Assembly: GCA_021613535.1 (NCBI GenBank)
Contig: CP075495.1
Location: forward strand, 12,648,001 to 12,712,000
Reading direction: 5' to 3'
DNA: 64,000 nucleotides
Origin: Adineta vaga
Lineage: Eukaryota > Animalia > Rotifera
Under the pieces are notes generated by a model. That model did no database searches. It was not told where the DNA came from and was given only the letters and a program-made list of their open reading frames with translations. The translations under genes were made by a program, and so were the position numbers. Below, piece after piece: positions 1 to 30,319 of the stretch. Within the stretch, counting starts at the first letter, position 1; every line of letters begins with the position of its first letter.

Positions 1-525
1 ATTATTTGCTTTATGACTTTTATCAACGACAACAAGGGCATTATAGAACAACAATAGTATATGTTGTCTTTATGGTATTTTTATCGATTTATTTTCTCCT
101 TTCTGTGTTTTGTTGAATGTAAAAAAAAGATCGAGTTTTTCTGTTCTAAATTGTTAAACTGCCACGTATGAAAAGAACTATTTTCTTACTGACAAATGAC
201 ATTTATTTTTATCAAGAATGATGAAATAACATGAAGGAAAAGAGAACACAATGATGAAAGAAATCCAGATATGACGATGCACTTCAGGATGTACGATAAA
301 TAGTCCTTTGCATTACCTTTTTTGGTGACGAAGAACGAGAAAAGAAGAATTTCATAATCATTGTTCTCATCACATTTATAAAAGATCAGCAGCATTACAT
401 ACACCGAAGAAAAGAAGAAATATGAGTCATAGTTGAGAGAAAAACATTTTTTTAGTTTTTTAATAGTTTCACTGCATTTGCACTCGTAACCGGTTTGTTT
501 TGTTTGTGATATAGATCATTCAAAA

Positions 526-6500: not shown

Positions 6501-7121
6501 GAAGTCAAATAGGTTTTGTTAGTCAAGAACCAATTCTTTTTGATGCATCAATTCGAGATAATATTGCCTATGGTGATACGACAAGAGATATTCAAATGGA
6601 TGAAATTCAAGAAGCTGCTAAAAAAGCGAATATCAGTCGTTTTATTGAGAATTTACCAGAAAAATATGAGACCAATGTTGGTACCAAAGGAACACAATTA
6701 TCTGGTGGTGAAAAACAGCGAATTGGTAAAATTGCATAAATCTTCTTTTGTGAAATGAACAAATTCTTTTCTTATAATTTATTTAGCTATTGCTCGAGCC
6801 CTCATTCGTAATCCACGCATTCTCTTACTTGACGAAGCAACTGTAAGATGAAAATAATTCCTTTGGAAATCATTGATAAACTATCGTTTTTGTCTTCTAT
6901 AGAGTGCACTCGATACGGAAAGTGAACGTGTAGTACAAGATGCTCTTGATCGTGCATCACAAGGTCGTACAACTATCGTTATTGCACATCGTTTATCGAC
7001 TATACAAAATTCAGATCTTATTTGCGTTGTTCATCGTGGTCACATTGTTGAATCAGGTCGACATGAAGAGTTATTGGCACTTAAAGGGCATTATTATCGA
7101 TTGGCGCAAGCAAAAAAATGA
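526..7121 (+). CDS. ABCB1: ABCB1/MDR1-type P-glycoprotein, full transporter (TMD-NBD-TMD-NBD), about 30 short exons
   Basis: Spliced translation gives TMD1 ([33 protein letters not shown]). NBD1 has Walker A GTSGCGK|ST, Q-loop VSQEP, signature LSG|GQKQR, Walker B ILLLDEAT|SALD and AHRL. TMD2 contains [25 protein letters not shown], and NBD2 has [17 protein letters not shown] and [14 protein letters not shown] at 526, TGA at 7119-7121. Subfamily B is secure; exact orthology to ABCB1 is not. Confidence 0.95.
3298..3576 (+). repeat. Copy 1 of a 279-bp intragenic direct repeat (ABCB1 NBD1, includes introns 3305-3365 and 3422-3481)
   Basis: Identical to 6719-6997 at an offset of 3421 bp, except T3478 versus A6899. 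Confidence 0.95.
6719..6997 (+). repeat. Copy 2 of the 279-bp intragenic direct repeat (ABCB1 NBD2)
   Basis: Direct base-by-base comparison with 3298-3576 shows a single mismatch, located in an intron. Confidence 0.95.
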
Positions 7122-7372
7122 CATTTTATTTTCAAAGAGTTCTATTTTTTATTTAGCGAGGCTTATGTTTGCTGGTGATTTTCTTTTGCTTTATACGTTA
7201 GTTTTTTGAATAAATAAAAAACAACAATGATTTTGGATTGTATGTCGTATAACAAACAAGAAGAAGAAGAAGAAGAAGTGCGCGAAAACGCATACAAATA
7301 GAAATGAAAATATGTTTCTTGTTTTCTTTCAAAGTTCTTGACTTAAACTACTTTTTTAAGTAATATTTTTGT

Positions 7373-9099
7373 TTAATATGGTGAATAATTTGATGAGCCA
7401 CCATTGCCACGACTTGCGCCACGGTATGATCCGCCTCGACCACCACGGTATGAGCCACCTAAGTGAAAATAATGATAATCATTATGTGTTACTAATATAA
7501 TATTTACCTCGATCATCATTGTCTCGGAAAGAGTCTTCACCGCCACTATCGCGACCTACAAAAAATATTTTTAATAATCGAAACTATTATTTCATTTGTA
7601 TATATGTAGCAACGTACTGCGAAAGCCACCACCACCACGACGATTATCGGAAAATCCTCGTCCGCCACTTCCACTATCTGCATTACCCCATCGACCGCCA
7701 CTACCAGAATTGAAACCTGGACGGGGATTGCTATCCCAATTACTTCGGCCACCACGATAACCTGTTTTTTAAAAATACAATCGATTAATAAAATAAACTT
7801 ACTAGGGAAAAAATTTAATACGTACCACCTCGGCCACCACGACCATTGTTGTCATTACGAGGACGGCGTTGAGCAAATTGAACATGTACAGATCCACCGA
7901 TTGAATCAATATGTTGATCTATTGAAATAATTAAACAATCAAGTAATTAAATACAATAAAATTTACCATTATATTGTGCAATTGCTCGATTGGCAGTATC
8001 TTCATCTTCATAAGTTACTGTGGCACGGCCATTTCCTTCACCAGTATCACGATCCTTGTAGATCCAAATTTTTGGACCACCTGATCGATCATCTGTCTAC
8101 AAAAATAAAATCTATAGTTTTAAAATGTCCCTTGATAGACATTAACTTACTTTAATGGTTCCAACGGTTGAAAAAGCATCAAAGATCTGATCGCGTGTAA
8201 TATCCTTCGGTAAATTTTGGATGAAAATTGCATCTCGAAGAATTTCTACATCCCCGCTATCTCTATTTTGTTGGCGAAATCCATAGCCACCGCCGCCGCT
8301 GCCGCCACGTCCTAAAATATCAATAATAGATGTAAACTTCATGGTCGAAAAGCAAATTCATATCCCAAAGAACGATACAAAACAAAATTTTTCGTCTCTA
8401 ATTATCAGTCAAAAAAATACATCTTTCAAAATTAAATCAATTTTTTTTTCTATATGTTCTTTTTTTTCAAAATTCAAATCAGTAATATCTAAACTGGATC
8501 CAACGGGCATATAAATCTTACTTGAATTATTATTTCCGAATGACCCACCATATGATCCACTATTGGAAGATAGAAATCAAAATAATCATCAAACATCATA
8601 TCATACATAAAAATAGGTGTAAATTTTTATAATATCAGTATATAGTTTTTTTGTTTACCATTTCTACCAATGTCTTACTTCAATTTCTTTTCTGTATTAT
8701 TCAAGTACTTGTATGAATATAGATTTTTTTAAATAATAGAGAACTTTTTATTTTTGATTGATTTGTTCCAAAAAATAAAAGTACACTGATGTTCGTGTAT
8801 ATATATATATATATGTGTGTATATAGTTTTTCAAACGAAAATAAAAAGATTGTATTGATATTATTAATCGATAGATAAAAAAAACTAATATAACGAATGA
8901 AGCTTACCCTCCTCTAGGACCATTGTCATCATCATCATTGGAACGAGAATAGCCGCCACGCGATGAACCTGATAAATTTATTTATTTATTTTTCAATAGA
9001 ACTAAAAATACATGGGCTGAACATACCGCCACGAGATCCAGAGCTCCAAACATTTCCACTACTACCTTCATTTGAATTCATACCGCCGTTAAAAGCCAT
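7373..9099 (-). CDS. FET-family (FUS/EWSR1/TAF15/cabeza-like) RNA-binding protein: RRM plus RGG boxes
   Basis: The RRM DAIFIQNLPKDITRDQIFDAFSTVGTIK|TDDRSGGPKIWIYKDRDTGEGNGRATVTYEDEDTANRAIAQYN has the FET-type extended loop. It is flanked by RGG/YRGG repeats, and the protein ends ...SRGNGGSSNYSPY* (PY-NLS-like). ATG at 9099, TAA at 7373-7375. Confidence 0.85.
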
Positions 9100-9940
9100 T
9101 AATAATTATACAAAAAAAGCAAGTTTTGTTGGATAATTTTGTATAAATTTATGAACGACTGAAAATCGAGAGAAAAGAAAACAAAAATAAGCAAGAAATG
9201 TTTTGTTATTCACTCTTGTGCCCTAAGAACATTTCTGTATCATAACGGAGGCACGATTATTATTTACGTGTCCAAGAAAAAGATGTCCCTAGTTAACGAT
9301 CAGAAATAGTATTCTATATATAGAATAAACCAGACGATATTCTTTTCTTTTAGATATATACTTATTCTATTTCTTACTCGATCCTACAAAATACTATAAA
9401 TCGATCTGAATTCAAGATAATCATAAAAATATAACTGCAGCTTCTCGAATTCATTTTCAGAATATGTTGAATATTACTAAAGCAAACCACGTATTTTCTA
9501 TTATATATTTGTTCTATATATTCATCGATCGTACCAAAATTGCTTAGCAAACGTAGATAAAAAATCATATCAGTGTTTTTCTGACTACTGTTTCAACTCT
9601 TTCCAAACAAAGATAACATCGACGTATATGAAAATCATTTGCTTATTTGTCGTCAGATATCCATTAAACAAAAATATCTCTATTCTATACCGATTATAAA
9701 CTAAAAACTCAATGTTATACAAACTAGAAAATGTCTCCCATCATCATTACGAGCTAGATCATTATTGGGTCAGATGATCAAAGGGAATAATTATTTGCAG
9801 TATTATAATTGTTTATCATATTTTTAGTTGTATGAGAATAAAATCATCTGGTATTTTTGCTTCTTTTATCAATCTTAAATATAAATTAAAGCGAACGCTT
9901 TATCGCTAAAATAATAGTTTTTATTCAATCATTAACCATC

Positions 9941-12337
9941 ATGCTTACGAAAGCAGGTATGTCAATGAGTGGAGATAACTAATATTTTAGCGATTTTAAT
10001 AAAATAATTTCGACTATCCATCTTTCAGGTTTGTATTCTTTAATCATCACTCTTTGTATTATTTTCGTTAATGCTCGACTTGTTTCATTACAACATGAGA
10101 ATAATCAACCGCTTACTATTGATGCTCTGTCACCAAATAACGTACCTATTGTGCCAACAATGAATCGAGCAGTGAAATCAACGTCTCGTATGAATATTTC
10201 AGTGTGTTATCCAGTTCTTGGTTGTTTTGATAATAATGATCCATATAATAATGCTGCTCTAGAAATTCCTCAAGCACCTGAATTGATTGATACTCAATTT
10301 CTTCTCTTCACACAAGAAACACCATCGAATCCAGAATTTCTTGCCTATGATGGTAATGATCAATCTATTGTAGAATCAAGTCTTAATTCATCACGTTGGT
10401 TAAGAATTATTGTACACGGTTTTGTAAATAATCGAGATAGTGTTTGGATCAAACCATTGAAAGATGAATTATTAAAATTGAAAAATGTCAGTATGACATT
10501 GTTACACTTTTTTCCAACAATTTCTACTCGATATTTTTCCTAGGATGATTTGTCCGATGTACTTGTTGTTGATTGGGGTAATGGTGCTAAATTTCCATCG
10601 TATCCAAATGCTGCATCCAATACACGTCTTGTTGGCAAACAAGTTGGTTTACTTTTGAGAAAATTACATGATATGAAAGGATTTTCATATGAGAAAATTC
10701 ATTGTATTGGTTCGTAAGACATTCTAAGTGTTGGGATCATTGATCTTTGATTTGTTCTTCTTTATCTAGGACATAGTCTCGGTGCACATACATGTGGTAT
10801 AGCATCGAATACTGTCGATAATCAATTGGCTCGTATATCAGGTCTTGATCCAGCTGGTCCATATTTCGAAGGCAAAAATGTATTGGTTCGTCTTGATGAA
10901 ACGGATGCAAAATTTGTTGATGTTCTTCATACAAATACTGAAATTGCACTTGGAATGGGCCTTGGATCTAGTGAAACATCTGGACATGTCGATTTTTATG
11001 TTAATGGTGGACAACATCAACCAGGTTGCCCTTCTATGTAAATTATATACAATTATTGGAGAATCTTTTGTCTCTCATTGAATATTTATTCTCTTTCTGT
11101 TAATCCGAATAGGACGTCAATGATTGGCAGTATGCTTGGTGGTCAAACAGAAGGTAACATTATTCTATGACATATATTTGAGATATTTACAGATGATTTG
11201 AATTTATTATACATAGCTACTTTTGAACAAACATCATGTTCACATAGTAAGTGTAACAAAACAATCAATTCGAATGCAATGTTTCTTTTTACTTGAAAAA
11301 TAAATAGGTCGTGCTCATGGATACTATACAGAATCAATAAAGTAAATATAATTTCTATTCCTTTGATGAATTAAAACATTCTTTCATATATCTTAGCTCT
11401 GAATGTCCATACACAGCATTTTCATGCAATAATTATGTAAGAAAAGTTCATACTATTCGAAAGTTGTTTGAATAGGATCTGTTTTTTTAGGATAGTTTTA
11501 TGAATGGCAAATGTCGTACCTGTTCAACATCTGGATGCGCTAAAATGGGTAATTAGAATGACACTATAATATTATAATGATTTGTTCACTTTTTTTCTTC
11601 TTTGAATATACAGGTTTTCATTCAATTTATTCATCTGGTCGTGGTAATATGTATCTATCAACAAAAAATACTTCACCATTTTGTGGTTAGATTAGATTTT
11701 TCATCGAATTCGATTCTCATTCTTTTCTACATTCGATAGGTTATCATTATCTTATGGAACTTACTATAGATCAAAATGTAGCTAAAACAAGCGGTGAAAT
11801 TTTTGTTGCAATCCATTCAAATTATGAAATGTTAGCTAATATCAGTATTACTCCAAAGTATGTATTTGTCAAGATAAGAGATCAAATAAATCGAATCTCA
11901 TAATATTTACTGTTTCTTTTTTTATTCGCATAGATCTAATTCTGATATTAAAGGTGGCGATGTCTTTCGCCATATTTTCAGTTATAAAGCTGATTTAGGT
12001 CAGGTTGACTACGCCATTATCTATTTCAATAAAGGCAAAAGTCGTATGTATTTAGTCGAATAAAATCAATCGAATAAAATCCATTAAATCTTTATTTTAG
12101 TTTTCGGTTGGGGTGGTCCAAAAGCTAATGAAGTTATCATATCACATCTTCGTTTGCAAGCACTTGAAGATATTATTGTGTATGTATATAGATAAATGAA
12201 TGATTATATTTGATATATATATATATGTATCTTCTTCTTTCTGAAATAGATACACTGGACTCTGTGGAGCAAAGACAAAAGTATCAGCTTACACATCTGA
12301 AACGATTTTACTTAATCGTGATGATTGTCGTAGTTAG
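9941..12337 (+). CDS. Pancreatic triacylglycerol lipase-related secreted lipase with a C-terminal PLAT-like region
   Basis: Signal peptide followed by VCYPVLGCF, IIVHGF, VVDW, catalytic HCIG|HSLGAH, RISGLDPAGPYF, DAKFVDVLHT, HVDFYVNGGQHQPGC and CSH. Start is MLTKAG|LYSLII; TAG at 12335-12337. Confidence 0.93.
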
Positions 12338-13493
12338 AAAGATAATTCTATTTTCAATACATTTCATGTTCATTTGAAAATTAAAAATAAATATCATCGT
12401 AGAAAGAAAAGTTTATAAAGTACAAAAACAATTCATTAAAGTTACTTTTTTTTTCTATTTCGAAAGCAATGTAGTAAGTATTCCTACTTAAAATTTGACC
12501 CATTATTTGACTTACAAGACTTCGTTAATTTATTCCATTATTGTGCATGAATAAATATCAAATATATTCCAATTTCATAGACGAAAATATTTTCTTGTTA
12601 TTAATCATCATTTGCCAATCGATCGATTCTTTCTTCGTGACAAATATGCAATAATTCATTGAGAATAAAAAAGAAAAGTAATAACTATTTTCTCATATAC
12701 AATCTATGTATGACAAAAGGACATTATGGTTTTTTTCTTTCTTTCTTTCTTTCTTTACTCCCAACATCATACGACATCTGTCTACACATCAGCTGACATG
12801 GTAGATTCATTTGATTTTTTATTTTCTGTTCATCTTCCTTTTATGGAAGTTTAGTGTATTAATCTGTCCACTCTCTCTCTCTCTTATTCGTTCTTCATCG
12901 TGTCTCCTCATCTTATCAGTATCAACATGATTGGAGACCTGTTTGACGATTGTAAATATCTTTATATATAACAAAAGTTCAAGTTCATTACTTGTCAACA
13001 AAAAACAAGTTTTTTTTGGATCTACGATAGATATTTATATATTTTAGATTCGATTGATTCATCTCGTTACTATTTCCACTGATAATTTCATGTGATTTTT
13101 CTTGATTTATTCAAAGTGACAATATTGATTAATAACATAACACAATCTTTATCTCCGATCAGGTATAATCTTGTTTTTCTTCTCTTTTTTTCTTTTATAA
13201 ATATCTATAAGAAGAAAAAAAAACAAAATGATACTTATCTATTATCATATTTGTTGTTTTCTTTTTTCTGCTTCTTCTTCTACCTTTCTATAACTACCTT
13301 TGATTAATGAATTACAATTTACATTCAAGGTTTTGTCTTTCCTTTATATTTACCGTAAAGAAAAACGAATATCAACAGCATATCTATAGTCTATGCGTTT
13401 TTATACAATTTTATAAACTATTTATAAGTTTCACATATTAGAGAACTTTTTCTTCTTCTTCTTCTTCTTCGTCTTCGAATTATTATACATCGA

Positions 13494-15949
13494 ATGGCGA
13501 CAAGGTGAGACGTCATGATTCTGGGAATAAAAATACAGTCATTCAATTTTTTTTTCTTTTCATTTCTTCAATACATATATCGAATGAACATAATACCGTT
13601 CGAAATGTTAGGTAGAGAATATTGTAAACGTAAAGAAAGAGAATATGGAGAAATAATATTTGAAACGAATTAGAATTCTTCTATTTCTTTCATTTGTATT
13701 TAGTTCGTTGTCAAATAATCCGATTGTTTTACCATCTTTACATGGAACTTTGAGTTTGCCAAACATCGCATCCGCAACTACCAATACGATCGACCGCCAT
13801 CTGGCAAGGATCGTTGCGGGCAATGCAGGTATATATCAAAATAGAGATGAAACGAATAAATGAATAAAATGGTTTCTTTGTTTTGTTTTAGAAAATTTAC
13901 GTTCACATCTTGATTCGATGTATAAACTGCTGCGACCCGACGATCGTCTAACTCTGGTATATTTGTTCAAATTAAAATAAAATAAAAGTGATTTTGTTTT
14001 TCATAGATGGTTCAACTGGAAAGCGTTTTTCCAAACCGTTATCGTTACCTAGTCATTGTTACATGTGTAGGAAGACAAGAAACAGAAGAGTAAGAAAAAT
14101 AGTTGCATGCTTTGGTTCTTCTTTTTAATAGTAATGATGTCTTTTTTTTGGTTAGATCGGCTATTCTTGGTTTTGATGTCGATACCGACGAGATTAGAAT
14201 TGGTATGGTATTACCAATATGGGCTGATTTGGATATAACACTCGACGGTGACGGGTAAGAAATTCTATATTTTAATACAATTTTTCATATCTAATATTCA
14301 CAATTATTCCATATTGTATTTAGTGGTTTCAAATTGACTTCTTACGAACGATGTCATGTTTTCAAGCCGGTGAGTGTACAAGCGCTATGGTATGTAATAA
14401 TCACTAAAATTGCTTAGCTATTTATATTATTAATGGAAATTGTCTTGTCCTAGGACTGCATATCAGAGTTTGCACAAAGCATCGAATCAAGCACGTCTTT
14501 ATAATTATATTGTTGATAATGGTTTAACACATACATGGATTGAATATTATCGTAATCGTGATATACGTTCAAATCAAACATATGTTAATGAATGGAACCA
14601 GATGGATGATATTTTATCACACCGAAGTGATTCACCTCATTTATATCAACCGTACGTAATAAAATTTAATCAACAACAAAAAAGAAAACTGTATCTATTC
14701 TCTAGATTATCATCAGATGAAGAAACATTACGTGCGAGAATACATGTTAAATTAAAAGAAATTATGCTACAAGTTGATCTTGATGAAGTGACATCGAAAT
14801 TTGTAAATTAACAAATAAGAAAACTTTCAATTTTCATACGAGTTTTTCTTTTAGTTACGAGAACAATTAGAAAATACTTTTCAAATATCTTTATCTCCTT
14901 ATAAACAGTATATCGATGATGTTATGTTACATATTCTTGCTCAAATGGATAAACCAACAATGATTCTGCCACATTTATATCTTGGTTCAGAGTGGAATGC
15001 ATCAAATTTTGAAGAATTAAAATCCAATAATATTGGTTATGTCTTGAATGTATCACGTGAAATCGATAATTTCTTTCCTGGTCATTTTAAATATTTAAAT
15101 GTTCGCGTACATGATCATGATGATGCTGATCTATTGAAAGAATGGGAAAAAACCTTTCGATTCATCAATGAAGCAAAGTAAAACTTAACAATTTCATTTT
15201 TCATTGTACAACTAATCAATTAATCGTTATTTTAGAGCGAATAATCAATGTTGTTTAGTTCATTGTAAGATGGGTATTAGTCGATCTGCATCGACGGTAA
15301 TTTTTTACTTTTTTCTTTTTTCTTAGTGGAAGATAGTTGATTTTAATATACTATTCTTCATTTAGGTATTAGCATATCTTATGAAAGAAAGCAATCATTC
15401 ATTTGCTGATGCTTTGGAACATGTGAAAAAACGACGATCATGTATTAATCCAAATGGTGGTTTTCGAAATCAGTTATTGATTTATGAAGGAATTCTTGCA
15501 GCAAAGTAAGATTTGTTTACATTTCGAATTCTAGTGTAAATAGATAAAATAGTATTATCCGATCGTTCAAAACATTTCTCGTTCGGCTAAGTAATACGAT
15601 TATTTCTTTTCTTCGAGGATAAAAAAAGCATGACCTTGTATTGAAAAGCTTTTGTTTTCATTCTAGTAAAACATTCCGAAGTAAATTAAATGACAGTCAA
15701 ACAACTACAACAACAATTGGCAAAAAAACAGTAACTATTCCAGCAATATCTTCATCATCATCATCTTCGACTACGAAAAGTACTCCGACCACTCCTGTTG
15801 AACATTCCCCACCAACAAATTCATCGATAGTTATTATGCGAACACGATCTCCGAATAAAACCAGTACTGTTGTTGTTGTTCCACGACAAACAACGGATCA
15901 CTGTAAACAAACAACACATGTAACTGCTCGACCGAATTCGATGATTTAA
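13494..15949 (+). CDS. SSH: Protein phosphatase Slingshot (SSH-N domain, DEK-C-like domain, dual-specificity phosphatase domain)
   Basis: [20 protein letters not shown]|[50 protein letters not shown] and catalytic [14 protein letters not shown]. The start codon is inferred from the short first exon ATGGCGACAAG|gt. Confidence 0.92.
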
Positions 15950-16706
15950 TTAATTTATAAATATATTTTTTTTCTTTGTTTCTTTCTTTCCATTCCTACT
16001 TATTGTACGTACGTTCTTCTTCTTCTGTCTCTTTTTGGACATACGGAAAGAAAATCGTTTTTGTATGTATGAAATCTAATTTTTCCTTTTGTTCTTTGTT
16101 CATGTTGGAATGATATTATTTCTTTCTTGCTCTTTCTTACTCCTTTTTTTCTTTCATTTTGTCTTTTCTTCTGTTATACATGTTTTCTGTTCCATTTTCT
16201 TCTGCTACATCACACATAGCTGACAAAAGCTTACAAATAAACAGAATAAATATTGAAAAATTATTTGAATCTTTATCTAATCATAAATACGATATAACGA
16301 ATTTTTCCTGCATACTGCGATTACTTAGAAGAAAAAACAGAATATCATTCTAGTCACGTATGTTGACAGTCAACTCAATGAGTCTTCCTATCAAAGTCAA
16401 GTGGAGATGACTAACGCAAAGATCAATAGTATGATATTTATTGCTTCTCTGATTATAGTGCCAATAAATTCATGAGCATTCATGCAATCTGTTCTAGTGA
16501 TAATTATTATCATCAGAACTGAATGACTATTGTCTGTCTAATTTTCATTACTTTAACAATGGCTCGAAATTTGCATTTGAAATTGTCTAATTATCTTAAT
16601 TTTTGAAAATTATATACGAGTAATTTGACTATATTCAAGGAAACAATATTCTATCGAGAACAATCATATTGCTTAGTTATTATTACATTGTATTATATAA
16701 ATAAAA

Positions 16707-18420
16707 TTAGACTTGTTTATGTTCACTAGCTGGCATATGTGTAAATTCGAAATCGAGATGAACAAATGCTCGTTCTATTTCATCAATAGTTTCCAATTGA
16801 TTCTGTAATCCAACACCAATATCATGAGCTTCGGAAAGTGGCATCGAACCAGGTAAACCAATATCGACTTCGGCAAAAAAGTTCGTTCCAAGATGAACAG
16901 CTTGAATAGAATCGATTTTTGAAACAATTTCCGGACGATAATTGTATGCCACATGTGTTAAGCGTTGAAGAAAAGGTGGTTCAGCCGTTAGACCTGTTAA
17001 ATGCCGCACTTGTCCTATACACGAATAACAAAAAAGTGATAGATTACGAAATAAACAAATTGAATACTATTTACTATTTGCTTGTAAGATCCAAGCAATG
17101 ATAATATAGACGGATATAACAATAGCACCGACTGGATCAACAACAATTGCTTCCTGTTTAATGTCACCTTTGTAAGCATGGGTTGCTAAAAAGAAATATT
17201 CAATGTAGTTTTTTATGAAAGAATTTCTATGTTTGCTGAATAATTAGACGAAAATAAACTGTACCTATGAGTCCACAAGCAAGTGCGACAATATTTGATG
17301 CTACATCATTCCGATTATCTTCCGCAAGTGCATACATAGTAGGATTTTTAATTCGATAACATAAGACGAAAAGAATCGCTTTTGATGCTAGAAAAATTAT
17401 AAAATGACTTTGATTTTACTTGATTAAAAAAATTCAAAATTTACTAATTGTTAAAACCATGGACACAATAGGTAAAATACTCATATCAATAAATGGTAAT
17501 GTTTTCGTTGATGAACCATTATTTTTATGTGTAAAATAATCAATATCTTGTTCTAATGCTTCACCACTTTCAAAAATGACTTGAACACTCGCTGAACACA
17601 TGATTACAGAAAGAATAACAATTGAAATCGGCTCAAGACGAGTTCTTCCTAAAAGATCAGTTTAAAATTAATTTCTCTAATTGTATCTTATACAAATTAA
17701 CCTCCTGGATATTTATAGAGATCGCGATGTTTGATTTTTCGTGATGTCCAAATGAGAATAAGACTTGTTAAGAGATCGACAGCACTGTCAACAACTGAAG
17801 AAATAACTGAAAGAGACTTGGATATGACAGCTGCTATAATTTTAATAATCAAAAGAATCTTCAATAAAATTGAAAAAAATAAATAAGACTGAGAGAAAGA
17901 GATAAAAACATACGATGTTTGCAATTAAAGTGACTATAGTTAATATTTTTATGTGGCGTTTTTGTCGTTTTTGAGCAGCTGTCTGATGGTCATCTGATTC
18001 ATCAGTTTTTGAAAGAAGAATATCTTCAATTGAGGTTATTAAATCCAGTTGTTGTCCATAAAATTCTCTATATTGAAAAATAAAATGAACATAAAGAAGT
18101 TTTTCCTCAAGTTACCAATACTTTTCTTACCTAACTTTTTTCGGAAGAGATTTATCATCTAGTTTACATAGAGGTTTAAAAGATTGAATATGTTCTAAAT
18201 AGCCATAGTTAGATGAAAGATTGGATGATGTTGTTGTTGTTTCTTGTTTCACGTCTATTTCTGAAGTATCATTAATATTCAGATTTGCTTGTACTGCTTG
18301 TTTTCTAACTGCTAGAAGACGTATTGGCCGTGATGGATGAACAGCATTTTTACTAAATGATGATCGTTTCCGATTTTCTCTCGGTAAAATCGCGGGTTCA
18401 TCAAGTTCTGCGTAATTCAT
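16707..18420 (-). CDS. Cation diffusion facilitator, Mn-CDF/MTP8-11-like metal tolerance protein
   Basis: SLSVISSVVDSAVDLLTSLIL, YKYPG|GRTRLEPISIVILSVIM, ALAEDNRNDVASN, VVDPVGAIV, FAEVDIGLPGSMPLSEAHDIG and ERAFVHLDFEFTHMPASEHK. DxxxD motifs in TM2 and TM5 are typical of the Mn-CDF clade. Confidence 0.9.
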
Positions 18421-18918
18421 CGGTTGATTGAAAGTTTTCTTCGAACGGATCAAATCAAATACAAGCTTTTATATATGCGTATATTTTTGTCAAAATTTTG
18501 TCGTATAAAACTTAGTATTTTTTTCTCTTTTCTCTATATCCGTGTGATCGATGGACCTTGTCATCGATTATAACGATCATTAATGAAGAAAATACTCCCC
18601 AATTTAACTTGTTATTTACTGCACAAGCAATGGGAGTATCATTCAATTAGAAGATAAGTCATATAGTGCATTTTTGTTTATTATTTCATCCACACATGTC
18701 TCGTTTAATAGTAAACAGTAAACAAAAGTTTTTTCAGTTCGAAGAAAAGAAAAAAAAAGAACAGAATAAAGCTATACAGTGAAAATACCAATGTGAAGCG
18801 TAAAAAAACCGAGAGAAAATAGCCACTGATTGATTGTTTGTTTGTTTTGTTTATCATTTTGAAGAGATATTTTATGATAAATCGTACGAATTGATGTTTC
18901 TTTTCTTCTGCCTGTCAA

Positions 18919-21900
18919 TTATCGATAACTTATTAAATATTCAGCATACGCTTGAGAATCATGAAATGTTACTAAAAAACAGAAGATAAATACATCGATA
19001 GAGATAATATAGTAATTCATGAGTATTACATCGTACCAAAAATACTGTGACCATCACCAGTAGTGTCAAAACCGGGTGGTGGGACGCGCATTGTTGAATT
19101 TCCTTGAGCAGTGTTACCAACAAGAACTCGAGCTAGAAAATAGGTCAAAAGAAAAAATATATATGAATTGAATTATGATTAAAAAACAAAGTAAATGTTT
19201 ATTTACTAAGAAACATTCGTCGAATACCATTACGATCTGGTAATGCATAACTATGACTGTATAAAGAATCACGTGCAAAATAACAACCTTGTCCATATGC
19301 TACGGCTAGAAAGAAAAGAAAATTCTCAAAATTCTGTTTGTATGCTAGTATAAACTAACCATGTTGACCAGCATATGAACGATTAAAACATTCCATTTCA
19401 ATATTTTTTGATGATCGTTCGTCACAGCCTGTATAAATAAAAACAGATCGACAAATTTTCCGTCTTTAATTATTTTGATTTTCTTTTATTTACCATGAAA
19501 TAACCATTGTTCAGTTTGTTTGCCTAATTTTTGTCGGAATTCGTGATCATGTGCTGAATATTGTTTGAACCATCGTTGATTTTGTATTCGTTCTACTTGT
19601 ATTATTGTTGGTACAGTATTGCCATGATTAACAGGTGGTGCGATATTTCGACGAGCTCGAGCCATTGTTCGATGACTCAATATTTGATTGGAAATATTTG
19701 TTTGAGTATATGAAACCGGAGCAGTTGGTGGCATGTGTGGAGGATATAAAGTATTAGGAAGTGTTTGTGATGGTTGAGGTAACGTATTTATTCCTGGAGG
19801 TGTCGGATATGGCCAGGGTCCGAAATTATGATTCATTGCTACTGCTGTTGACATTGCTGTTGCTATAGATGACGGTGGATTTGGATTTGTGGGAAGTCTG
19901 TTGTTTTGATTAACAGAAACGGATACTGGACCAAATGGTTGTTGTAATGCTGTCTGATAATGTGGAGGTGGAAGTGTTGGATTCGATGGTGGTGTTAAAA
20001 ACAGGGAGGTTGGTGGTACAGGTCGCATAGGCATTGCAGGCATACGAGTAGAAGTTATCGGACCAGCAGCTAAATTTGGAGTTCTAAGATTTGACCAACT
20101 TTTGATAAATTTATCCGATACAAATTTATGTTCTGTAGATTGTGGATCTAATATATGACGAGAGAAATTTGTTAACATCGGTAATGTCCAATATTTAGGT
20201 AAACATTGTTGTTGATTGAACAATAACATGTCAAGATCCAAATCATCATGATCATTATCATCATTATTATTATTATCTGCTGTCTAAATGGAAAGAGATT
20301 CATATAAAAAAATATTTTAGAAAATTTTCTATTGAAAAACAAAACATTTACCTGATTATCACTTTTTTGTTTATTAAAATGGACTGCATGTTCAAATTCA
20401 AATAATTTATTTTGTTGATATAATTGTATAGCATCAATTTCTGGCGATGGTAAACGTAAATTTGCTATATCATTACGTTTAATAGAAGTACGACAAAGTG
20501 AACAAACTGAAAATTAAGACAAACAAACTTCTAATACTTACTCAAAAACATAAATCAAACTTACGAAGTAATTCATTCGTTGTCGTTCGTTGACGATTCA
20601 GATCATTGGCAAAACAATCATAACATATTTTACAATTACAATTCAATACAAATATATTTCCATATGAATGTTGTTTGGAACATAATTCACATTTACGACG
20701 TGGTGTATCATCCATATTTGTTGTAGCTGTTACTATATTATTTTGTTGTTCAACCGTCGGTTCGGTATTCACTGTATCTTCAGCACCATACAATTGATAA
20801 TATAAATCGATTACCTTTTTATTTTGATATTTCTGATATAAAATTATCTGTTCATTTGTAAAGAGACGATTTTCTGATAGATCTCTATCTTGTAAATGAT
20901 AAGTACATTGATAACATGTTAAGATTTCATCCTTGTTCATCTATAGATTAATGAATATATAAATATTTTTTATCATTTCAGAAACATTTAGATGACAATA
21001 GTGATCGGTTGACTTCTACATTTCATAAAAACAATGATATTTTTCAATTGATATCTAAATTCCCACTCGTATATAACAAATATATATTATCTTATCTAGG
21101 CTAATACTAAACTATCATTGAATTAAAACGTCACTTCTCAGAATATGTATACATAATCTCTTTCATAGATGAAATACACTTACTTGATTTAGTACATGTT
21201 GTTTAAAGCATAAGATACATAATGAATGATGATCATCACAATTTATTGAATAAATGTCTTCAGACTGTATTGTAGTTTTGCATACATCACATAATTCATT
21301 TGAAGAAACTAAATTATAGGAATACAATTGAATATCAATGAAAATAAAATCAATTTACCTATTGGTTGATTGAATTCTTCAATGATTTCATAAACATCAA
21401 TAGATCTTCGATATTTTCGTTGCCATGTATTGATAAATAATTTAATATTTTTTTCCTCAATATTTGGATTTTGTAAATGTTTAACTAAAAATTGTGCTAA
21501 TGCTGTATTATCATCATTATTACATATGATCATATGTTCTTCATAGTCATGAATTAAAACGGGACAATAACATACTTCACAGGGTATTGTTAATGAACGT
21601 CCGAGACATTCATTTTGATGAATATAAAAATTATGTTGATCAATATATAAATCACATTTATCACATTTTATTCGATTATTATTTGTTTTTGTATTTAGAG
21701 GTTTTAATTCAATTAGTTGAAGAAGAATTTGATGATCTTTGATAGCAATTGGTAAATCATCGAGATCTTCGATTTTTAATGAATATTCACAATCAATTAC
21801 TAAACATCTTGGTGGTGTTTTATCCTTTTAAATAAAATGAAAGAAATTATATTTGTAATGAAAACAAAAATACAAAAGTTTAGTTTTCGATCATACTTGT

Positions 21901-22181
21901 ATATGTTTTTGTGTCCAATTAAAAATACAATTTAGACAAAAACAATGTAATGATGGACAATTGAATGTTTTCAGTAATTTTTCTTGTTTTCCACAGAATT
22001 TACATTTTTCTTTATTTTCTTCGATACGATCTGCTGTTAAATTAATGAAAACACAGCCTGAGGAATTTGAAAGACTTCGTCTGAAACTTGGTGATTGGCA
22101 ACGTCGTTTAGGTACAGAATATATACGATCTGACTCTGTATTATCTTCATTAACATCTGGTTTTGAAGACGATCGATTCAT
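18919..22181 (-). CDS. Multi-RING / C2HC zinc finger protein with a C-terminal PARP-like mono-ADP-ribosyltransferase domain
   Basis: The ART domain reads VERIQN..WLFHG|C..FNRSYAG..YGQGCYFARDSLYS..MFL|ARVLVG..SIFVTFHDSQAYAEYLISYR*. The N-terminal half has three RING-like Cys/His arrays and two Cx2Cx11Hx3C fingers. The start at 22181 is tentative. Confidence 0.88.
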
Positions 22182-22780
22182 TCTATCATCTAAAATATCA
22201 ACAAATTTCAGTTAGTCGAATAATTTCATCTTAAATGAAATATCCCAGTACATCATGTCACTTAACTTTTGTCGACCAATGACAATGAATTGTACGATGG
22301 AAAAAAAATCTGACTGTCGATGATGAGTCATTCTCTTCAATACTATTCGCTATTCGCTTTTTTCGTATCAAGTAACTTGAATTAAATATGAATGAAGAGC
22401 GCGCTAATTGTACCGTTGGGTGTTGGGTCTCGAGAAAAAAGCAAGCCTGTAACTCAAATTCTATTCAATCAATTTTTATAATGTATTTCTTGAGGGTAGG
22501 TGTGATGGTGACGACGAAATATCAATCCATATTCACTCATAATTTCAAGTCATATCAGAATTGAATGAAATTTCGAGTTGTTCGATAGATTATTAATAGA
22601 ATCTATCCATTTGTAAAACATATTTACTGAATATCAAATTGACAAAGAAAAGAAAACGAAAACAAATCAGAAAATATTACATGATATTAGAAGATCAATG
22701 ATTATTCTAATGAAACGAAAAGAGTGACAACGCGAGAGAGAGAGAGCGACAATGATATGATCAAATAAGATAAAGAAAGT

Positions 22781-25700
22781 CTAGGCAAGTTGTGGTGGAG
22801 GAGGTGGAGGTGGTCGTTCACGAAGAAGACATTGTAATCCAGCATTGTCGGCACATTGACAAACACGTTTAGCACGAAGACTTAAATTAGGTAAACAAAG
22901 TTGACCAGTGGTACAATCATTATTGTCACCACAAACATTATTCACTAAAATAAATGAATATAATATATAATTTCTTTTTTTTTTTTCTTCATTATTATTA
23001 TTTTACCATCATTCGGACATGAATCTTTAACTGCAACTAAGCCATATAATTTACCATTACCACCTGGTGGTAAAAGAATACTATCTGGTGTACGGCTCGG
23101 TGTCTTATCAATTCGACCAATTTTATTTCTAAAAGAATAATAATCTATATGCATAGAGTATGGTTTTTCCAGTATATTACATACGTTGACCAATCTGTCC
23201 AATATGCATATTGAAGTCCATCACTAAGGCCGAAGATCATTGTTGTTTGATCAGTTAAAAGAACACGACGATTTGATCCATCATCGCGTACACATTCGAC
23301 TGTTTTCATTTTTGCATCACCCCAACATAATTCTCGACGATGATGATCATAATATAGACCATTAGGTAAACCAAGTTTTTCTGAAACAAGTATTTTTCGT
23401 TCACTTCCATCCATATTTGCTCTTTCAATTCGAGGATTTTGTCGATTCCAATCAGTCCAGAAGATATATCTACAGAAGAAAATCAATTATTTAGAAAAAA
23501 AAGGCTTTTCAACCATGGATGATACAAACCCAAGTTCAGGATTAACAGCAATACCACGAGGATTTTGAATATTTTTATCAAGAAGTACTTTACGTAAACT
23601 ACCATCTAATTTAGCTACTTCCAAACGTTTCAATGCTGAATCTGTCCAAAATACTAAACGAGATACCCAATCAATAGTGATACCTTCAGGACTACCAAGA
23701 CCTAAAATTAAAGAATGACTATATTACTATTAATTTGATTCACTTTTATATTACCGCTAAGAATAATTTTTTGTTCGGTACCATCATATTTTATTCGTTG
23801 AATAGTTTTACCAGATGTATCGGTAAAGTAAACAAATTGTTGACGACAATCAACAGATATACCAACAGCACGCATTTCTATATAAATAAAAGATTTTTCT
23901 CTTTTCGTGAAAAATAACACGACTTTTTTTGTTATTAATTACTTGGAACATAGAGAATACGATGATCACCATTATTTGTTAAACCTGATGCTGTTAAAGG
24001 TACTTTAAGAATTGTTTGTCCTTGATTAACAATTAAAAATTGTTCTTTCGGTCCACCGAGTGTTTCTCAACTATAATAGTAGAATATTTTTGAATTTTCA
24101 GTAAAAAAATTTCAAAATCTTTACTGTATTCCATCACCCACAAAACCATCTTTACATGAACAAACATTATCTTGAAGAATTGGATCATAAACACAAGCAG
24201 CTGATGAAGAGCAAATTGTTGCATTTTCCAAACAAGAATCTAAAAGAACTCTTCGGATAAAATTCACACGAAATTATCATGAAAATCTCTTACGTTCGTG
24301 ACGACATGTTATACCATCTCCTTTATAACCAGTTCGACAGAGACATACATGTCGATCAATACGTTCATTGTATATACATTGAGCATTAACATGACATTTG
24401 TTGTCAATATTACAAGACACTACTGAAAGAGAAAACAACAAAAGATAAAGTTAAAATATAATCTGTATTTTCTTTTTTTATATTTCATTACCATCTTTCA
24501 CACAAGTAGAAAATGTTGTACCATCATTGAGATATCCTGGATCACAAACACATTTACTAAAACCTGGCCGTTGTTCATCAGGTAAACAATGTGCATTATA
24601 TCCACAATCACCATCAGAGGAACAGAAATGTGCCGTACAAGAATATCCATCACCATAAAAACCTGATATCCAACAGATGATTAGAATATTACATTCATTT
24701 CTTTTTGAAACAAAGAATGATATTTGAACAAACCTGGTTTACATATACATTCATATTTTTGCGTATTTTCATTAATTAAACAATTTGCATTTGTATCACA
24801 ATTGTAATATTCATTACATTGTTTTGGTTTACAAATTGATTTATAATTTCCATTAACATGATTTTCATGATCATCCGTCATTTGCCAACCTTCTTTACAT
24901 AAACATCGAACATGTCTCGTATGTGGATCTTGAATACATGTAGAAAATTGTGGACAAACTTTTGTTGCACATGTTTCAACTAGATAAAAACAAAATAACT
25001 ATTGTAAAATTCACTTTTTCTCTAGTTTACTTTCATCATTGATGGGTTTACAGAAAAATCCATTTCCAATGTAATTTCGTTTACATTCACAAGTAAAATT
25101 TCCGTATGTATTAGTACATATAGCATTTGGATGACATGGAGATTGTATACATTCATTGATATCTACGATTGTAGACGAAAAGCAGGGTTAAAGATAAAGA
25201 AATTTGAGTATTTTAGTTTTACCATCACAACGTCGTAGGCCATCGCCAAGAAACCCTGAATTACATTTACATTCGTATGTATTCTTTTCGAAATTTGGTA
25301 TGCATTGAGCATAGGCATGGCAAGGTGAGGAATCACATGGATCATACTTTGGTGCTAGAAAAGAAAAACATTTTCTTTTTCTTGATCATTCAAAGTACGA
25401 TTTACCAATACCTTGAGTACCAACTTTTGTTACAGTAAAAAATCGAATAGTTGTATCTTCAATCGAATGATAAATATGATTATCTTGATTTGATACTACA
25501 ATTTCTTTTGGTGATCGATGTGGATTATGTGGACATTCATAAAACGTTAAACTATCTTCAATTTCATAACTCATATTATAAGTAATACTTGTATTAGCAT
25601 CAACTTTGGAAATCAAAGAATAGGTTGGTGATGATTTAGCATCATAATGACCTAGAAAATATACGTTTTGAATTAGTTCAAGTACAATTTAAACGAACCT

Positions 25701-27659
25701 AATGATCGTTTGACATATTTTATATTATTATTTCCTACAGTAACCGATAGATTTCCTTCTGGATGTGGTAAACTTCCATTGATATAAGTATCAACACGAA
25801 GAACACCTGATTCAATTCCAAGAAAATATTGTTCAATATTTAAAATCGCTTGTTCAGTTGTATTATCAGCTTCAAAGATTCGTACGGCTGTTGAACGATT
25901 CAACACACCACCTAAATATGAAAAATTTCATCGTTTTTAAAACAGAAATGAAAATTTATTCGTAAGTAACCTGTGAGAGCAAATCCATTATCAATTGGGT
26001 CTGAAAATCGATGTACTGTACCAAATAACCAATGGATAGTATTGAATAATGGTATTAATTGTTGAAGATTTGAATGAGTTAAAGGCATGTTATAGAGTGA
26101 ATTATGTATACGACCATCTTCAATATAAATATAACCTTGTAATTCAGAGTCAATTTTATGACCATTGATTGTGCCATTGATTTTACCCACAACTGGATAG
26201 TTTTCTATGTGAAATTCATTCCGAAAATAGGACGTAGAATAAGAAGATACCGATAAACTTACCAGCACGTTCACATCGTTGACCAGATCCAAGATAAGGA
26301 AAAAGACAGCGACAACAATATCCATTTCCTTGATTTTCACATCGAGCATTACGAGAACAAGTTTTGCATTCGATCGCATCTAAGACTCGTTGATTAATTT
26401 CTAGATAATGATCATTTTAAATTCAAATTACCTGGTGGAATTGTTGATGTAGTCGGAGCTGATACATGTTCATAATAATAATTCTGTGGTTGATGTTGAT
26501 ATATATTCGATGAATACGGTGCTAGAAGTAGAATACAAATCATAGTTATCTATAATATAATCTACTTAAAAAACATACATTGGACTGGTACAAGGACTTC
26601 TTCGACTTCATCTGCACTTCCTGCTGGTGTTATACGAAATCTTCCATAGCGACGTCGATCACCGATTAAATAGATCCAAACACCTGCTTTTCCAATATTC
26701 GAATCTCTATTTATTCAGTAAATAGTTAACTATATAATATTTTTTCTACACCTACTTAGCTAGATTGCCGGCTGCTTCGCCACTTGATCCAGGTAAGACA
26801 ATCGTTTGTTGAGAAGTACCATCAGTAAAACCAGCTTCAGCATATCGATCTTCTCGACCTAATTTTGTTGGACTATACGCAGATATGAATTCGAGTTTTG
26901 CATACATAAAGATAGAATATGTTTGTGTACCATCGCTGACAACAGCAACTTGAAATGTATTTTTCTATATTAATAAAAAAAATAAGAAGATAACTCTCAA
27001 TCATTTTCTTGTTTTTTTTCTCCTTTTACTTTATCATCTTTATTCGAATAAGAATGTACATCTTTCCAGGTACAGATTAAAATTGAATTTGGTTGAAAAT
27101 TTGTTGAACGTGGAAAACCTTCTTGAACTAATTTCTTTGCCTTTTCCAATAGATGTTCTTCTTTCGTATATCTAAGAATATATCATATACGAAGAACAAA
27201 TTGAGATAAAAAAAGAAATATTTTACTTGTATGTAATAGAACCACCTTTTATTGAAGCATCAATATCAGCCCAAAATGGTGCAATAATTGCATATCCACT
27301 ATAACTTGTTAATGTAATTTGAGGAAAGAAATAAGCAATTGGTAATAAAAATGAGAGGAAACCATTGGTATTAATCTTTATGAATGACAAACAAATTATT
27401 TTTTTTATTTTTATTGTGTTCAAAGAAAGGTTATATGAAAATAATTACTTACATAAATACTTTCATATTTTGTTGTTATGAATGGTATTTCTGGTGAAAG
27501 AATAATTTGTTCTGAATGTGTATCATCTTCCTTTGGTAATTGTATTCCATCTTCATAGATGAAAAATTCTGATTCACTAATACTTTGACAATAGATATTG
27601 AAATTGATGAGAATTAAAAGACAAAAGACTGCCTTTCGATTTATATAAGACACGATCAT
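22781..27659 (-). CDS. NID: Nidogen/entactin (NIDO, EGF, G2 domain, about 7 EGF repeats, YWTD beta-propeller, EGF)
   Basis: Signal peptide, then NIDO ([34 protein letters not shown]), a G2-like region ([15 protein letters not shown]), multiple EGF/cbEGF repeats and [33 protein letters not shown] repeats. TAG at 22781-22783. Confidence 0.93.
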
Positions 27660-29309
27660 ATTGAACGATGACAAAAAAACGAAGAACAGAGATGATTTGT
27701 ATGCCTATTAATGCTTCGTAGTCAAATGTATGAATACGAATGAATCGTATCAATGAACGTTAGCTTCGTTTTTTTCTTCTTCGTCTTCTCTATTCTCTAC
27801 AAAGAAATGATAATGATCAAGTAAACTATATACGTATAAATGTATATACGTGTATATGTTCAATGTGTTTAACGATGCAATGTGTAACTCTAGAGATAGT
27901 GTGTGTGTGTGTGTGAATACGTGCATGTATTGCATAAAATAAAACACATCGAGTCAATCTAATATACATATATGAACATGAATGAGAGCATGTATTGTAC
28001 TGTTAGCATTCAAGCATATAATATACTAACAACAGTGAACGTGTGCATGTTTTAACAATATCAGAGACCAAACAAGTGTTCTTTTGTGTTTGTCTGTCTA
28101 TTTGACCGCAAGAGACATTGTGATGTGATAATACAATCGATGATAATAATAATAAGAAATTCAACAGAGCAATTACATCATTGATATGTCAGAGAAAGGT
28201 ATTTCAATGGTGCACGATTCTATGTTGATTTATGTCGAGAACATTTTCTGTTTTGTTGCATCATTGAATAACATGGTATTTCAAATTTAATTCCTATTGA
28301 ATTCGAATAAAAAATTTAGATACATGTGTGTATGATAGTTGAATTTTTACGTATTACTCAATAGAATGATTACAAGAGATAATACTGTCTAGTAAAATAG
28401 AATCAATTCATTTGAGAAGACATTTTATTTGGATGTACATATTCTGAATAGTATACATGTATGTGTAATGTTTTATATATCATATTATTTTCTCAATGAA
28501 ATGATCAATGATCAATGATTATCATCCGAAAAGTGTTCTCATCGATATGTATATCAATAATGAATTATATGCTATTCTCGTTACTAATCTGAACATTTAG
28601 TATATGTCGAGAGAGAGAGAGACAGAGAAAAAATTATCTTTGTACATGTGAAGTATGAAACTTTGATGTAATTTTATCAATTCAATGGTACTCAAAAGAA
28701 ATTTGTCATTTCTTCTCAATGGAATCGATGATTATCATTATAAATGACATTTCTAGTACATCTTCTTCTTCGAATAAAATTAATTTCATTTTCAATGTTA
28801 TTAGTTTTTGTTTTCTTCTACATATAATCAAAATGTATATATATATATTATTGTTCGTATTATAATCGAATCAAATATTTGTTGTAAAGCTGTCGAAAAA
28901 TGATCAATAAAATTCACTTGTATTCTTTCTACTTGTCAAACTATAAATTGATGGTGAAGACATTTGTTTTTCCCATGAGTACAATTGTATTTACATAAAC
29001 ATTTTTATTCTTCTTAGGTAAATAGAATTTACAAATGAACAGTCAATGTTAATTTACGAAAATATCGTCAAATGAGAAGTTTTTGTCTGAGATAATAATC
29101 AAATTAACATATATTGATCTAGAAAATGTTGTATTTTTGTGAAAATAACAATTCATTTCGATATACCCATGGGCAAAATTTATTATATTAAGCAAAAAAA
29201 GAATGGATTTCTTAAGATATATTATTTTTAAATACTGTTGAGCGATAGATACAATAAGAGAATTTTTTTCTTTCTTTTTTTTTCTTCGTGTACAAATTAT
29301 CGTTGATAT

Positions 29310-29686
29310 TTATTGTCGAAGATTATCAGTAGCCATCAGATCACGACGTTTAAGTCCAACAAGATAAGAGGCTCGTTTACCGACTAAATATGTACCACGT
29401 TTGCCAACTAAATAGGATGCTCGTTTAGCGGCCGAAAGATCTTCATCTAAAATAGAAGACAAACATCATCAAAACACTTTCTTGATTCAAATTTCTTTTT
29501 ACCACTATCATTGAAATCTTCATCGGATGCGGTTACATATCGTTTGCCTACCCAATAACCATTAAGATGTTTTCGTTTTTGCAAGAGATCAGTAAACTGT
29601 TCACGTTCTTTATTGGCTTGAACCATGATAAATGATAGACCAAAAAGAACGACAAAGATATAAGCAAGAATTGACTGGTATTGCAT
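29310..29686 (-). CDS. Neuropeptide precursor (two exons) yielding YWVamide/YLVamide peptides
   Basis: Signal peptide MQYQSILAYIFVVLFGLSFIMVQA, then KR-KHLNGYWVG-KR, KR-ASYLVG-KR-GTYLVG-KR-ASYLVGL-KRR with an acidic spacer. The dibasic cleavage sites have Gly amide donors. Confidence 0.88.
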
Positions 29687-30319
29687 GATTTTTCTTTGAA
29701 GTAAATAAATCTATAGATCAATAATCGTTGAAAAAAGAAACACAAGTTCTCAAGGAATAAGACGGATACGAAATGAGGATCAATAATCTAAAAGAAAATC
29801 GTATAAATAGAGAAAAAAAATAAGAAATAGAAAACGGTCTTTTTTTCAGATAGAAGGAGGGAAACAACAGAATTGGAAATAACGAGGAAAGGGAAAGCAG
29901 TAACCTGTGTGTGTTCACGCATACCTTCGAGGCATTCATGCATCAGACAGCGATATTATTATCATTTAATTCATTTCCAAGTTAAAGCATATCGTTACTT
30001 AATGATCTAAAACTGAATAGATACTATTGATAAATTTCTCTGTCATATACACTTCATTACTCATCGGTATCTCAAATGATTGAAAGAAAGAAATGAATTG
30101 AAAAATAATAATTCGATACGGATTTCAAGTAATTATTAGTGCTGATCAACAGTATGTATATATGTAACTATAAAAAGAGAAATTTGACAATCTTACATTT
30201 CTTTAACGAACAATAAGAATGGTTAACTTTCGGTGACAGTTTTTGCTTCATTATCTACAGAAAAATAATGCTTTTGATCAAAAATGAACGGACAATTAGC
30301 TCTTCGATCTGCGTAAATA

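Follow-up and report, generated by a model that had tools for sequence, protein, structure and literature searches.

What kind of protein arises when RING-type domains, C2HC zinc fingers and a mono-ADP-ribosyltransferase (ART) domain are encoded at a single locus, and could such a chain write ubiquitin as well as ADP-ribose? We addressed these questions for a locus of the bdelloid rotifer Adineta vaga lying in a 64,000-nucleotide stretch of contig CP075495.1 (the window; positions below count from its first letter). The window gene was modelled with 10 exons on the minus strand, from 22181 to 18919, which together comprise 2514 nt or 837 codons; all introns are GT..AG and the reading frame has no internal stop. 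The parts of this model to which the argument returns are the following.

21897..22181, minus strand: exon 1, low-complexity N-terminus and start of RING-a (exon model, RNA contigs)
21359..21824, minus strand: exon 2, end of RING-a, two C2HC fingers and helical bundle (exon model, RNA contigs)
19494..20283, minus strand: exon 6, acidic linker, ART piece A, Pro-rich insert and ART piece B as far as the catalytic His
18662..18918, minus strand: 3' untranslated region (RNA contig coverage)

RNA-type contigs from three studies have introns 1-4 and 6-9 spliced out at the predicted sites, and none of the exon joints is present in a DNA run (X9) used as a control. Intron 5 adjoins a repeat; here the record coordinates of one RNA contig (X14 contig 7) agree with the prediction, leaving just the 53 exon bases 20231-20283. 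This contig extends from exon 1 to 19900 in exon 6 and further RNA contigs extend from 19847 to the 3' end, so that the two contig sets together, not one contig, cover the mRNA. The intervening gap of 52 bases (19847-19900) lies within a single open exon and is an allelic bubble, at which the DNA assembly breaks too. Orthologs are represented by four independent NCBI gene models of 820-849 aa, all with the identical joined structure. The locus is a real, spliced gene of bdelloid rotifers. A preliminary description of this DNA, whose quoted motifs all proved to lie on the minus strand where it had placed them, had proposed a single gene, and the spliced RNA joints, the stop-free frame and the four joined ortholog models bear this out. 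Two adjacent genes or a splice artefact were ruled out by the RNA joints, conserved introns and the four independent models, and a pseudogene by the open frame and a dN/dS under 1.

We ran homology searches with the window exons one by one, searching a genome of 100.8 Mb in six contigs, and carried out full-length tests on the NCBI ortholog proteins P0099-P0102. Single-exon Pfam searches gave weak RING and PARP matches only. The first part of the zinc-binding half of the protein contains four features.

21789..22004, minus strand: RING-a, RBR RING1-like, with an extended 4-residue Zn loop II; spans intron 1
21606..21665, minus strand: C2HC finger 1 (Cx2Cx11Hx3C), ligands invariant in orthologs
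21522..21581, minus strand: C2HC finger 2 (Cx2Cx11Hx3C), ligands invariant in orthologs and RBR paralogs
20905..21291, minus strand: RING-b, the RING1 of the parental RBR, in exons 3-4 and spanning intron 3, with no IBR after it

The AlphaFold model of the zinc part of the A. ricciae ortholog (RING-a to RING-b) reached a pLDDT of 82. RING-a of this ortholog matched the RING1 of RNF144A (Z 9.3), followed by ARIH2 (8.3) and HOIL-1 (8.1), and RING-b matched HOIP RING1 by structure (Z 8.3) and Parkin RING1 by profile (E 5e-4). RING-a and RING-b scored Z 7-9.3 against RBR RING1 structures versus 6 or less against canonical RINGs, values near the tool's warning level for common arrangements; yet the top eleven rows were all RBRs and the profile search agrees. 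The three RING-type domains of the preliminary description thus stand but are re-read as RBR RING1-type domains, with RING-a and RING-b matching RBR RING1 structures. All Zn ligands and RING1-following helices of the zinc half are conserved, and the E2-contact residues of each of the three RINGs are only partly canonical.

Both C2HC fingers that had been described are present, with ligands that do not vary among orthologs, but their class needed revision. UBZ4 fingers typically carry an Asp (HxDxC); this residue is absent from both fingers in the window gene and four orthologs despite the matching spacing, and UBZ4 fingers were ruled out. Of the earlier assignment the spacing holds, the UBZ-like reading does not, and the TRAFD1-like reading is a weak lead. 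The fingers had no Pfam match and a weak match to a multi-finger protein, and weak exon-2 Atlas leads (scores under 0.9) include RNF138/RNF114-type RING-C2HC proteins. A TRAF/TRAFD1-like or RNF114-like C2HC finger appears to fit better than UBZ4, as a weak lead.

The origin of the zinc half is indicated by the other exon-2 matches in the A. vaga genome: there are three, and all are RBR ligases with an RBR-ZZ layout (several C2HC fingers, RING-a, twin fingers, helical bundle, RING1, IBR, RING2, ZZ). The fusion protein is colinear with RBR-ZZ from RING-a to the helix after RING-b, over ~280 aa and with E down to 1e-39; its RING-a groups with RING-a of the RBR-ZZ family, and a phase-1 intron before RING1 is common to the window gene and the RBR-ZZ genes. 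The parental RBR-ZZ proteins have IBR and ZZ above the Pfam cut-off, and a RING2 motif with a catalytic-type Cys was present in 17/17 of them versus 0/4 fusion proteins. IBR (PF01485) had no match in the window gene or its orthologs, and in the three orthologs checked the IBR position, between the RING-b helix and RING-c, is occupied by a Cys-free linker. Judged from these comparisons, IBR, catalytic RING2 and ZZ are lost and are replaced by the ART. An intact RBR ligase was ruled out, and because RING2 is absent the protein cannot work as an RBR ligase.

Compared with RBR E3s (Parkin, HOIP, ARIH, RNF144A) and bdelloid/fungal RBR-ZZ proteins (for example A. vaga I4U23_012111), then, the window gene lacks IBR, RING2 and ZZ. 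It has RING-a, the twin C2HC fingers, the helical bundle, RING1 with its helix and one intron in common with the bdelloid RBR-ZZ genes; in the window gene RING1 is duplicated and the ART stands in place of the catalytic half.

The bdelloid RBR-ZZ proteins (L006, L007, L008; P0054, P0055) carry C2HC fingers in a tandem array, one additional RING1-like domain and a RING2 of unusual form. Their named non-bdelloid matches are Dothideomycete fungi at 33-35% identity, and a horizontal origin is possible. One paralog has an apparent frameshift in its IBR (L006:5740-5767; C3 ~5.221 Mb), in a part omitted from NCBI model P0039, which may be an assembly error or a broken allele.

Whether any ubiquitin-ligase activity could survive the loss of RING2 turns on the third RING, which lies between the former IBR position and the ART.

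20490..20691, minus strand: RING-c, spanning intron 4; a C4C4 variant whose loop II has 2 residues and whose last ligand is followed by Arg

RING-c is 27% identical to RING-b (E 2e-8) and its best match to a parental RING1 has an E of 4e-18; by this relationship it is evidently a duplicate of RING1. RBR RING1s bind E2~Ub in an open, non-discharging form and need RING2 to pass ubiquitin on, whereas in canonical RINGs loop II is two residues long and a linchpin residue is often present (PMC5462532). By the criteria of the same paper, RING-c has eight Zn ligands, a 2-residue loop II and a linchpin-type Arg. The combination of the short loop II with Arg after the eighth ligand was found in 11/11 ortholog loci; Arg occupies the linchpin position in 0/15 parental RING1s and is also absent from RING-a and RING-b. 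RING-c sits on a long branch and is conserved thereafter. The 'E3 ligase' of the preliminary description consequently falls as an RBR-type enzyme, with IBR and RING2 lost; because RBR RING1s do not transfer ubiquitin alone (PMC5462532), what is left of it, a canonical route, rests only on the linchpin-type Arg acquired by RING-c.

These observations raise the alternative that the protein is a dual enzyme, in which RING-c acts as a canonical RING E3 that discharges E2~Ub straight onto substrate, so that ubiquitin and ADP-ribose are written by one chain; this amounts to a repaired version of the proposal in the preliminary description. We consider this possible but doubtful; it is a real rival because the RING-c Arg is found in every ortholog locus and in none of the parental RING1s. 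The long branch followed by conservation also speaks for it, as do the RNF138/RNF114-type Atlas leads, and, as mentioned in the discussion of PMC5462532, altered HHARI transfers ubiquitin without its active site. The case is nevertheless carried by one residue. On the E2-contact surface of RING-c the loop I Leu is present, but the helix Trp and loop II Pro are absent. Loop II Pro and helix Trp are common in active canonical RINGs. DTC, Di19 and UIM were not detected by Pfam in the four full-length orthologs, which again weighs against a dual enzyme. AlphaFold modelled RING-c at low confidence, and a PDB search with RING-c alone returned nothing significant. On its features, canonical E3 activity of RING-c is conceivable, with the balance clearly tilted the other way; the fuller scenario, in which an RBR RING1 reverted to a canonical RING E3 after the ART swap and one chain writes both modifications, seems rather improbable. 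If true, a dual enzyme could possibly make a hybrid ADPr-Ub mark, which mammals make with separate proteins (a PARP plus DELTEX or RNF114).

The second half of the protein is an ART domain split by a long insert.

20095..20211, minus strand: ART piece A, first strand and helix of a PARP14/15-type domain (alignment with PARP14 chain residues 8-35 and with uninterrupted paralogs)
19615..20094, minus strand: Pro-rich insert, 160 residues, 21% Pro, disordered, inside the ART fold
18919..19614, minus strand: ART piece B, from the end of exon 6 across exons 7-10 to the stop codon
19497-19495 (His), 19282-19280 (Tyr) and 19043-19041 (Ile), minus strand: the triad

The ART starts at ~20211, ahead of the Pro-rich stretch. 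We found that the A. ricciae ortholog aligns with PARP14 (E 6e-26), its H-Y-I falling on the PARP14 H-Y-L, and that an ortholog ART model matches PARP15 (Z 21.3, 177 of 198 residues); PDB searches with exon 6 and with ART piece B gave nothing significant. The triad is without the poly-ART Glu, and His, Gly, both Tyr and Ile are invariant in orthologs. A mono-ART-type H-Y-I domain, as previously described, is upheld by this alignment and by the missing Glu: the ART is a clade-3 PARP14/15-type domain, predicted to be a mono-ADP-ribosyltransferase.

The Pro-rich stretch was ruled out as an interdomain linker, as it sits between the first helix of the ART and the next strand, where PARP14 has one residue and ART paralogs a handful. 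In six ortholog loci the insert is 115-163 residues long with 27-34% Pro, in frame and divergent in sequence, and its pLDDT is under 50. An insert of 115-174 residues where PARP14 has one, together with the fact that H-Y-I alone is no proof of activity, could mean that the insert disables or gates the ART, leaving a pseudo-enzyme of the PARP9 or PARP13 kind that serves as an NAD+/ADP-ribose-binding or interaction domain. That is a very improbable reading: the triad, the Gly after His, the stacking Tyr and the donor loop are intact and form the most conserved part of the protein, and in the model, albeit alignment-driven, a PARP15-like fold is completed around the insert.

The A. vaga genome contains 82 PF00644 matches, and among the ART paralogs closest to this domain several are ankyrin/macro PARPs. 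Introns 6 and 8 are common to the window gene and 1/14 ART paralogs (L021/L031), in which four C2HC fingers accompany an ART and a phase-0 intron lies immediately ahead of the ART. L021/L031 is the strongest candidate for the ART donor lineage, although its sequence is not clearly closer. The L031 copy (L031:6150-7880; C2 ~14.10 Mb) is a separate gene, in which four TRAFD1-like C2HC fingers are fused to the ART.

We next consider how widely the combination is kept. Full-length orthologs were found in A. steineri, A. ricciae, Rotaria sordida and Rotaria sp. Silwood1, and five metagenome bdelloid loci (L012, L049, L050, L053, L054) have an exon order identical to that of the window gene. The orthologs are annotated as 'Poly [ADP-ribose] polymerase' or unnamed, and PF00644 is the only Pfam family above cut-off in the four full-length proteins; as they carry only a PARP name and a PARP family in the look-ups made, their RINGs are easily missed. 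The nidogen / window gene / cation-efflux gene neighbourhood occurs in all four named species, and one copy of the window gene was found in the A. vaga genome. The ART is 85-88% identical to four ortholog loci, with a dN/dS of 0.10-0.17; in the zinc half this ratio is 0.21-0.52. The window gene is, by these ratios, evidently under purifying selection, and the RING/C2HC/ART combination is, as far as these sequences indicate, conserved across bdelloids. Non-exhaustive searches found no non-bdelloid protein joining the exon-2 region to an ART, in line with the earlier suggestion of a lineage-restricted protein: the architecture was found only in bdelloids in these searches.

From Adineta to Rotaria the gene order nidogen, window gene, cation-efflux transporter (same strand) and slingshot phosphatase is kept (window ~14900-29800). 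L012 also contains, ~4 kb downstream of its ortholog, an ORF that matches PF01129, an ARTC-type ART (L012:16689-17531).

For the role in immunity or DNA damage that the preliminary description had put forward, we found nothing in support: only one copy was found, its gene neighbourhood is kept and purifying selection acts on it. This single-copy, syntenic and conserved pattern ruled out a fast-evolving multigene family of immune genes, and it looks regulatory rather than like an arms race. PARPs of A. vaga are induced by radiation and rehydration (PMC10809525).

The faster evolution of the zinc half relative to the ART fits a different division of labour, in which the zinc half is a scaffold/dimerisation and targeting module (TRAF or BARD1-like) that places an ordinary mono-ART on its substrates, without E2 dealings and perhaps pairing with intact RBR-ZZ paralogs. 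E2 docking alone poorly explains three RING1-like copies, and weak Foldseek matches to TRAF6/TRAF5 RING-finger proteins, none with E under 1e-3, point the same way. We judge this unlikely, as conservation extends to all Zn ligands, to the helices that follow RING1 and to the RING-c Arg, and the best structural matches are E2-binding RING1s.

The explanation we prefer is that an RBR-ZZ ligase gene duplicated its RING1 and swapped IBR-RING2-ZZ for a PARP14/15-type ART. The ART would transfer single ADP-ribose units from NAD+, the RING1-type domains would remain a docking site for an E2 or E2~ubiquitin conjugate, and partners would be bound by the C2HC fingers. The enzyme would then MARylate members or clients of the ubiquitin machinery (E2, ubiquitin, a partner ligase or ubiquitylated proteins) and would not be a thioester-forming E3; more tentatively, the Pro-rich loop might be a docking, condensate-forming or self-modification surface. 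We give about an even chance to such a bdelloid-wide chimeric mono-ART, aimed at the ubiquitin system via E2-docking RING1-type domains. RBR-ZZ colinearity with the shared phase-1 intron, RING2 loss, the RBR RING1 structure matches, the intact ART site, purifying selection, the open-state binding of E2~Ub by RBR RING1s (PMC5462532) and a separate IBR-ART family in the genome count in its favour; against it count the linchpin-type Arg of RING-c, which it does not need, and the partly canonical E2-contact residues. The AlphaFold models gave no inter-domain arrangement (pTM 0.44 and 0.46).

Comparison with known systems places the window gene outside named families. It is common with PARP14, PARP15 and PARP10 (ARTD8/7/10) in ART sequence, fold, donor loop and H-Y-I/L triad, but these proteins have macro, WWE, RRM, KH or UIM domains, which were not detected by Pfam in the four full-length orthologs, and only the window gene has an RBR-derived zinc half and a long Pro-rich ART insert. 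It is neither a PARP14/15/10 ortholog nor an RBR ligase. In the ADPr-Ub writers and readers PARP9/DTX3L, PARP14-DTX3L and RNF114/RNF138/RNF166, RING, C2HC and mono-ART come together but on separate polypeptides (PMC12687431). DELTEX and RNF114 use DTC, Di19 or UIM for ADP-ribose-ubiquitin chemistry and reading, and these domains of DELTEX and RING-UIM enzymes are the ones that went undetected in the window-gene orthologs. The clade-6 UBCc-PARP proteins of fungi, moss and green algae likewise join a ubiquitin-pathway domain to a PARP, but with an E2 fold and in another PARP clade (PMC4245714).

A closer precedent is Dictyostelium DDB0232928, given as U-box-Macro-PARP in two PARP family surveys (PMC2964712, PMC4245714), in whose relevant passages no RING or IBR fusion is mentioned. 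As in the window gene, an E2-binding RING-like domain and a clade-3 PARP share one chain; DDB0232928, however, has a single U-box and a macrodomain, without RBR-derived RING1s or C2HC fingers, and the two are presumably independent fusions. The novelty claimed for the fusion therefore appears to hold for this architecture but, given the Dictyostelium protein (PMC2964712), not for an E3-like domain and a clade-3 PARP in one chain. Literature searches found no description of the architecture and no named family, in agreement with its having gone unrecognised in the preliminary description; a survey of Atlas clusters for other RING-PARP proteins, which is not equivalent to an architecture search, returned PARP-only clusters.

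A second family of the A. vaga genome is also relevant. At C1:14773058-14773633 and C5:231424-232029, an IBR match and a PARP match share one open frame (2044 and 1717 aa) with ~70 codons between them; here IBR is kept with the ART directly after it, whereas the window gene is without IBR, and the family is a separate one because it was not detected with window-gene exons. Its presence in the same genome makes 'half-RBR plus ART' less unique, and suggests that a half-RBR and ART swap is a repeated evolutionary move, this separate family seemingly having made a similar one. The window gene offers a clean natural case in which the catalytic half of an RBR has been swapped for an ART, and the intact parental family, present in the same genome, serves as a control. 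It makes testable both the reversion of an RBR RING1 to a canonical RING by gain of a linchpin and the idea that ubiquitin-system components are natural substrates of a PARP14-like enzyme, and its ART fold tolerates a disordered insert of 115-174 residues.

The 5' end of the mRNA has two further features.

22190..22191, minus strand: spliced-leader trans-splice acceptor (AG), mRNA 5' end (loose 5' end of RNA contig X14)
22178..22189, minus strand: 3-codon uORF directly after the acceptor, its TGA overlapping the main ATG

The loose 5' end of the X14 contig is the 3' end of a 23-mer, which we take to be the bdelloid spliced leader and which occurs 42 times in the genome (control, 0). The uORF, with its ATG at -8, out of frame and with an overlapping stop, is present in the window and 9 ortholog loci, its middle codons being variable. 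It is possibly a translational brake or stop-restart element and, more tentatively, might hold protein levels low. The trans-splice acceptor lies only ~590 bases from the stop codon of nidogen, an arrangement that may be operon-like. The 42 copies of the 23-mer lie on C1, C2, C4, C5 and C6, often as close divergent pairs ~154 bases apart.
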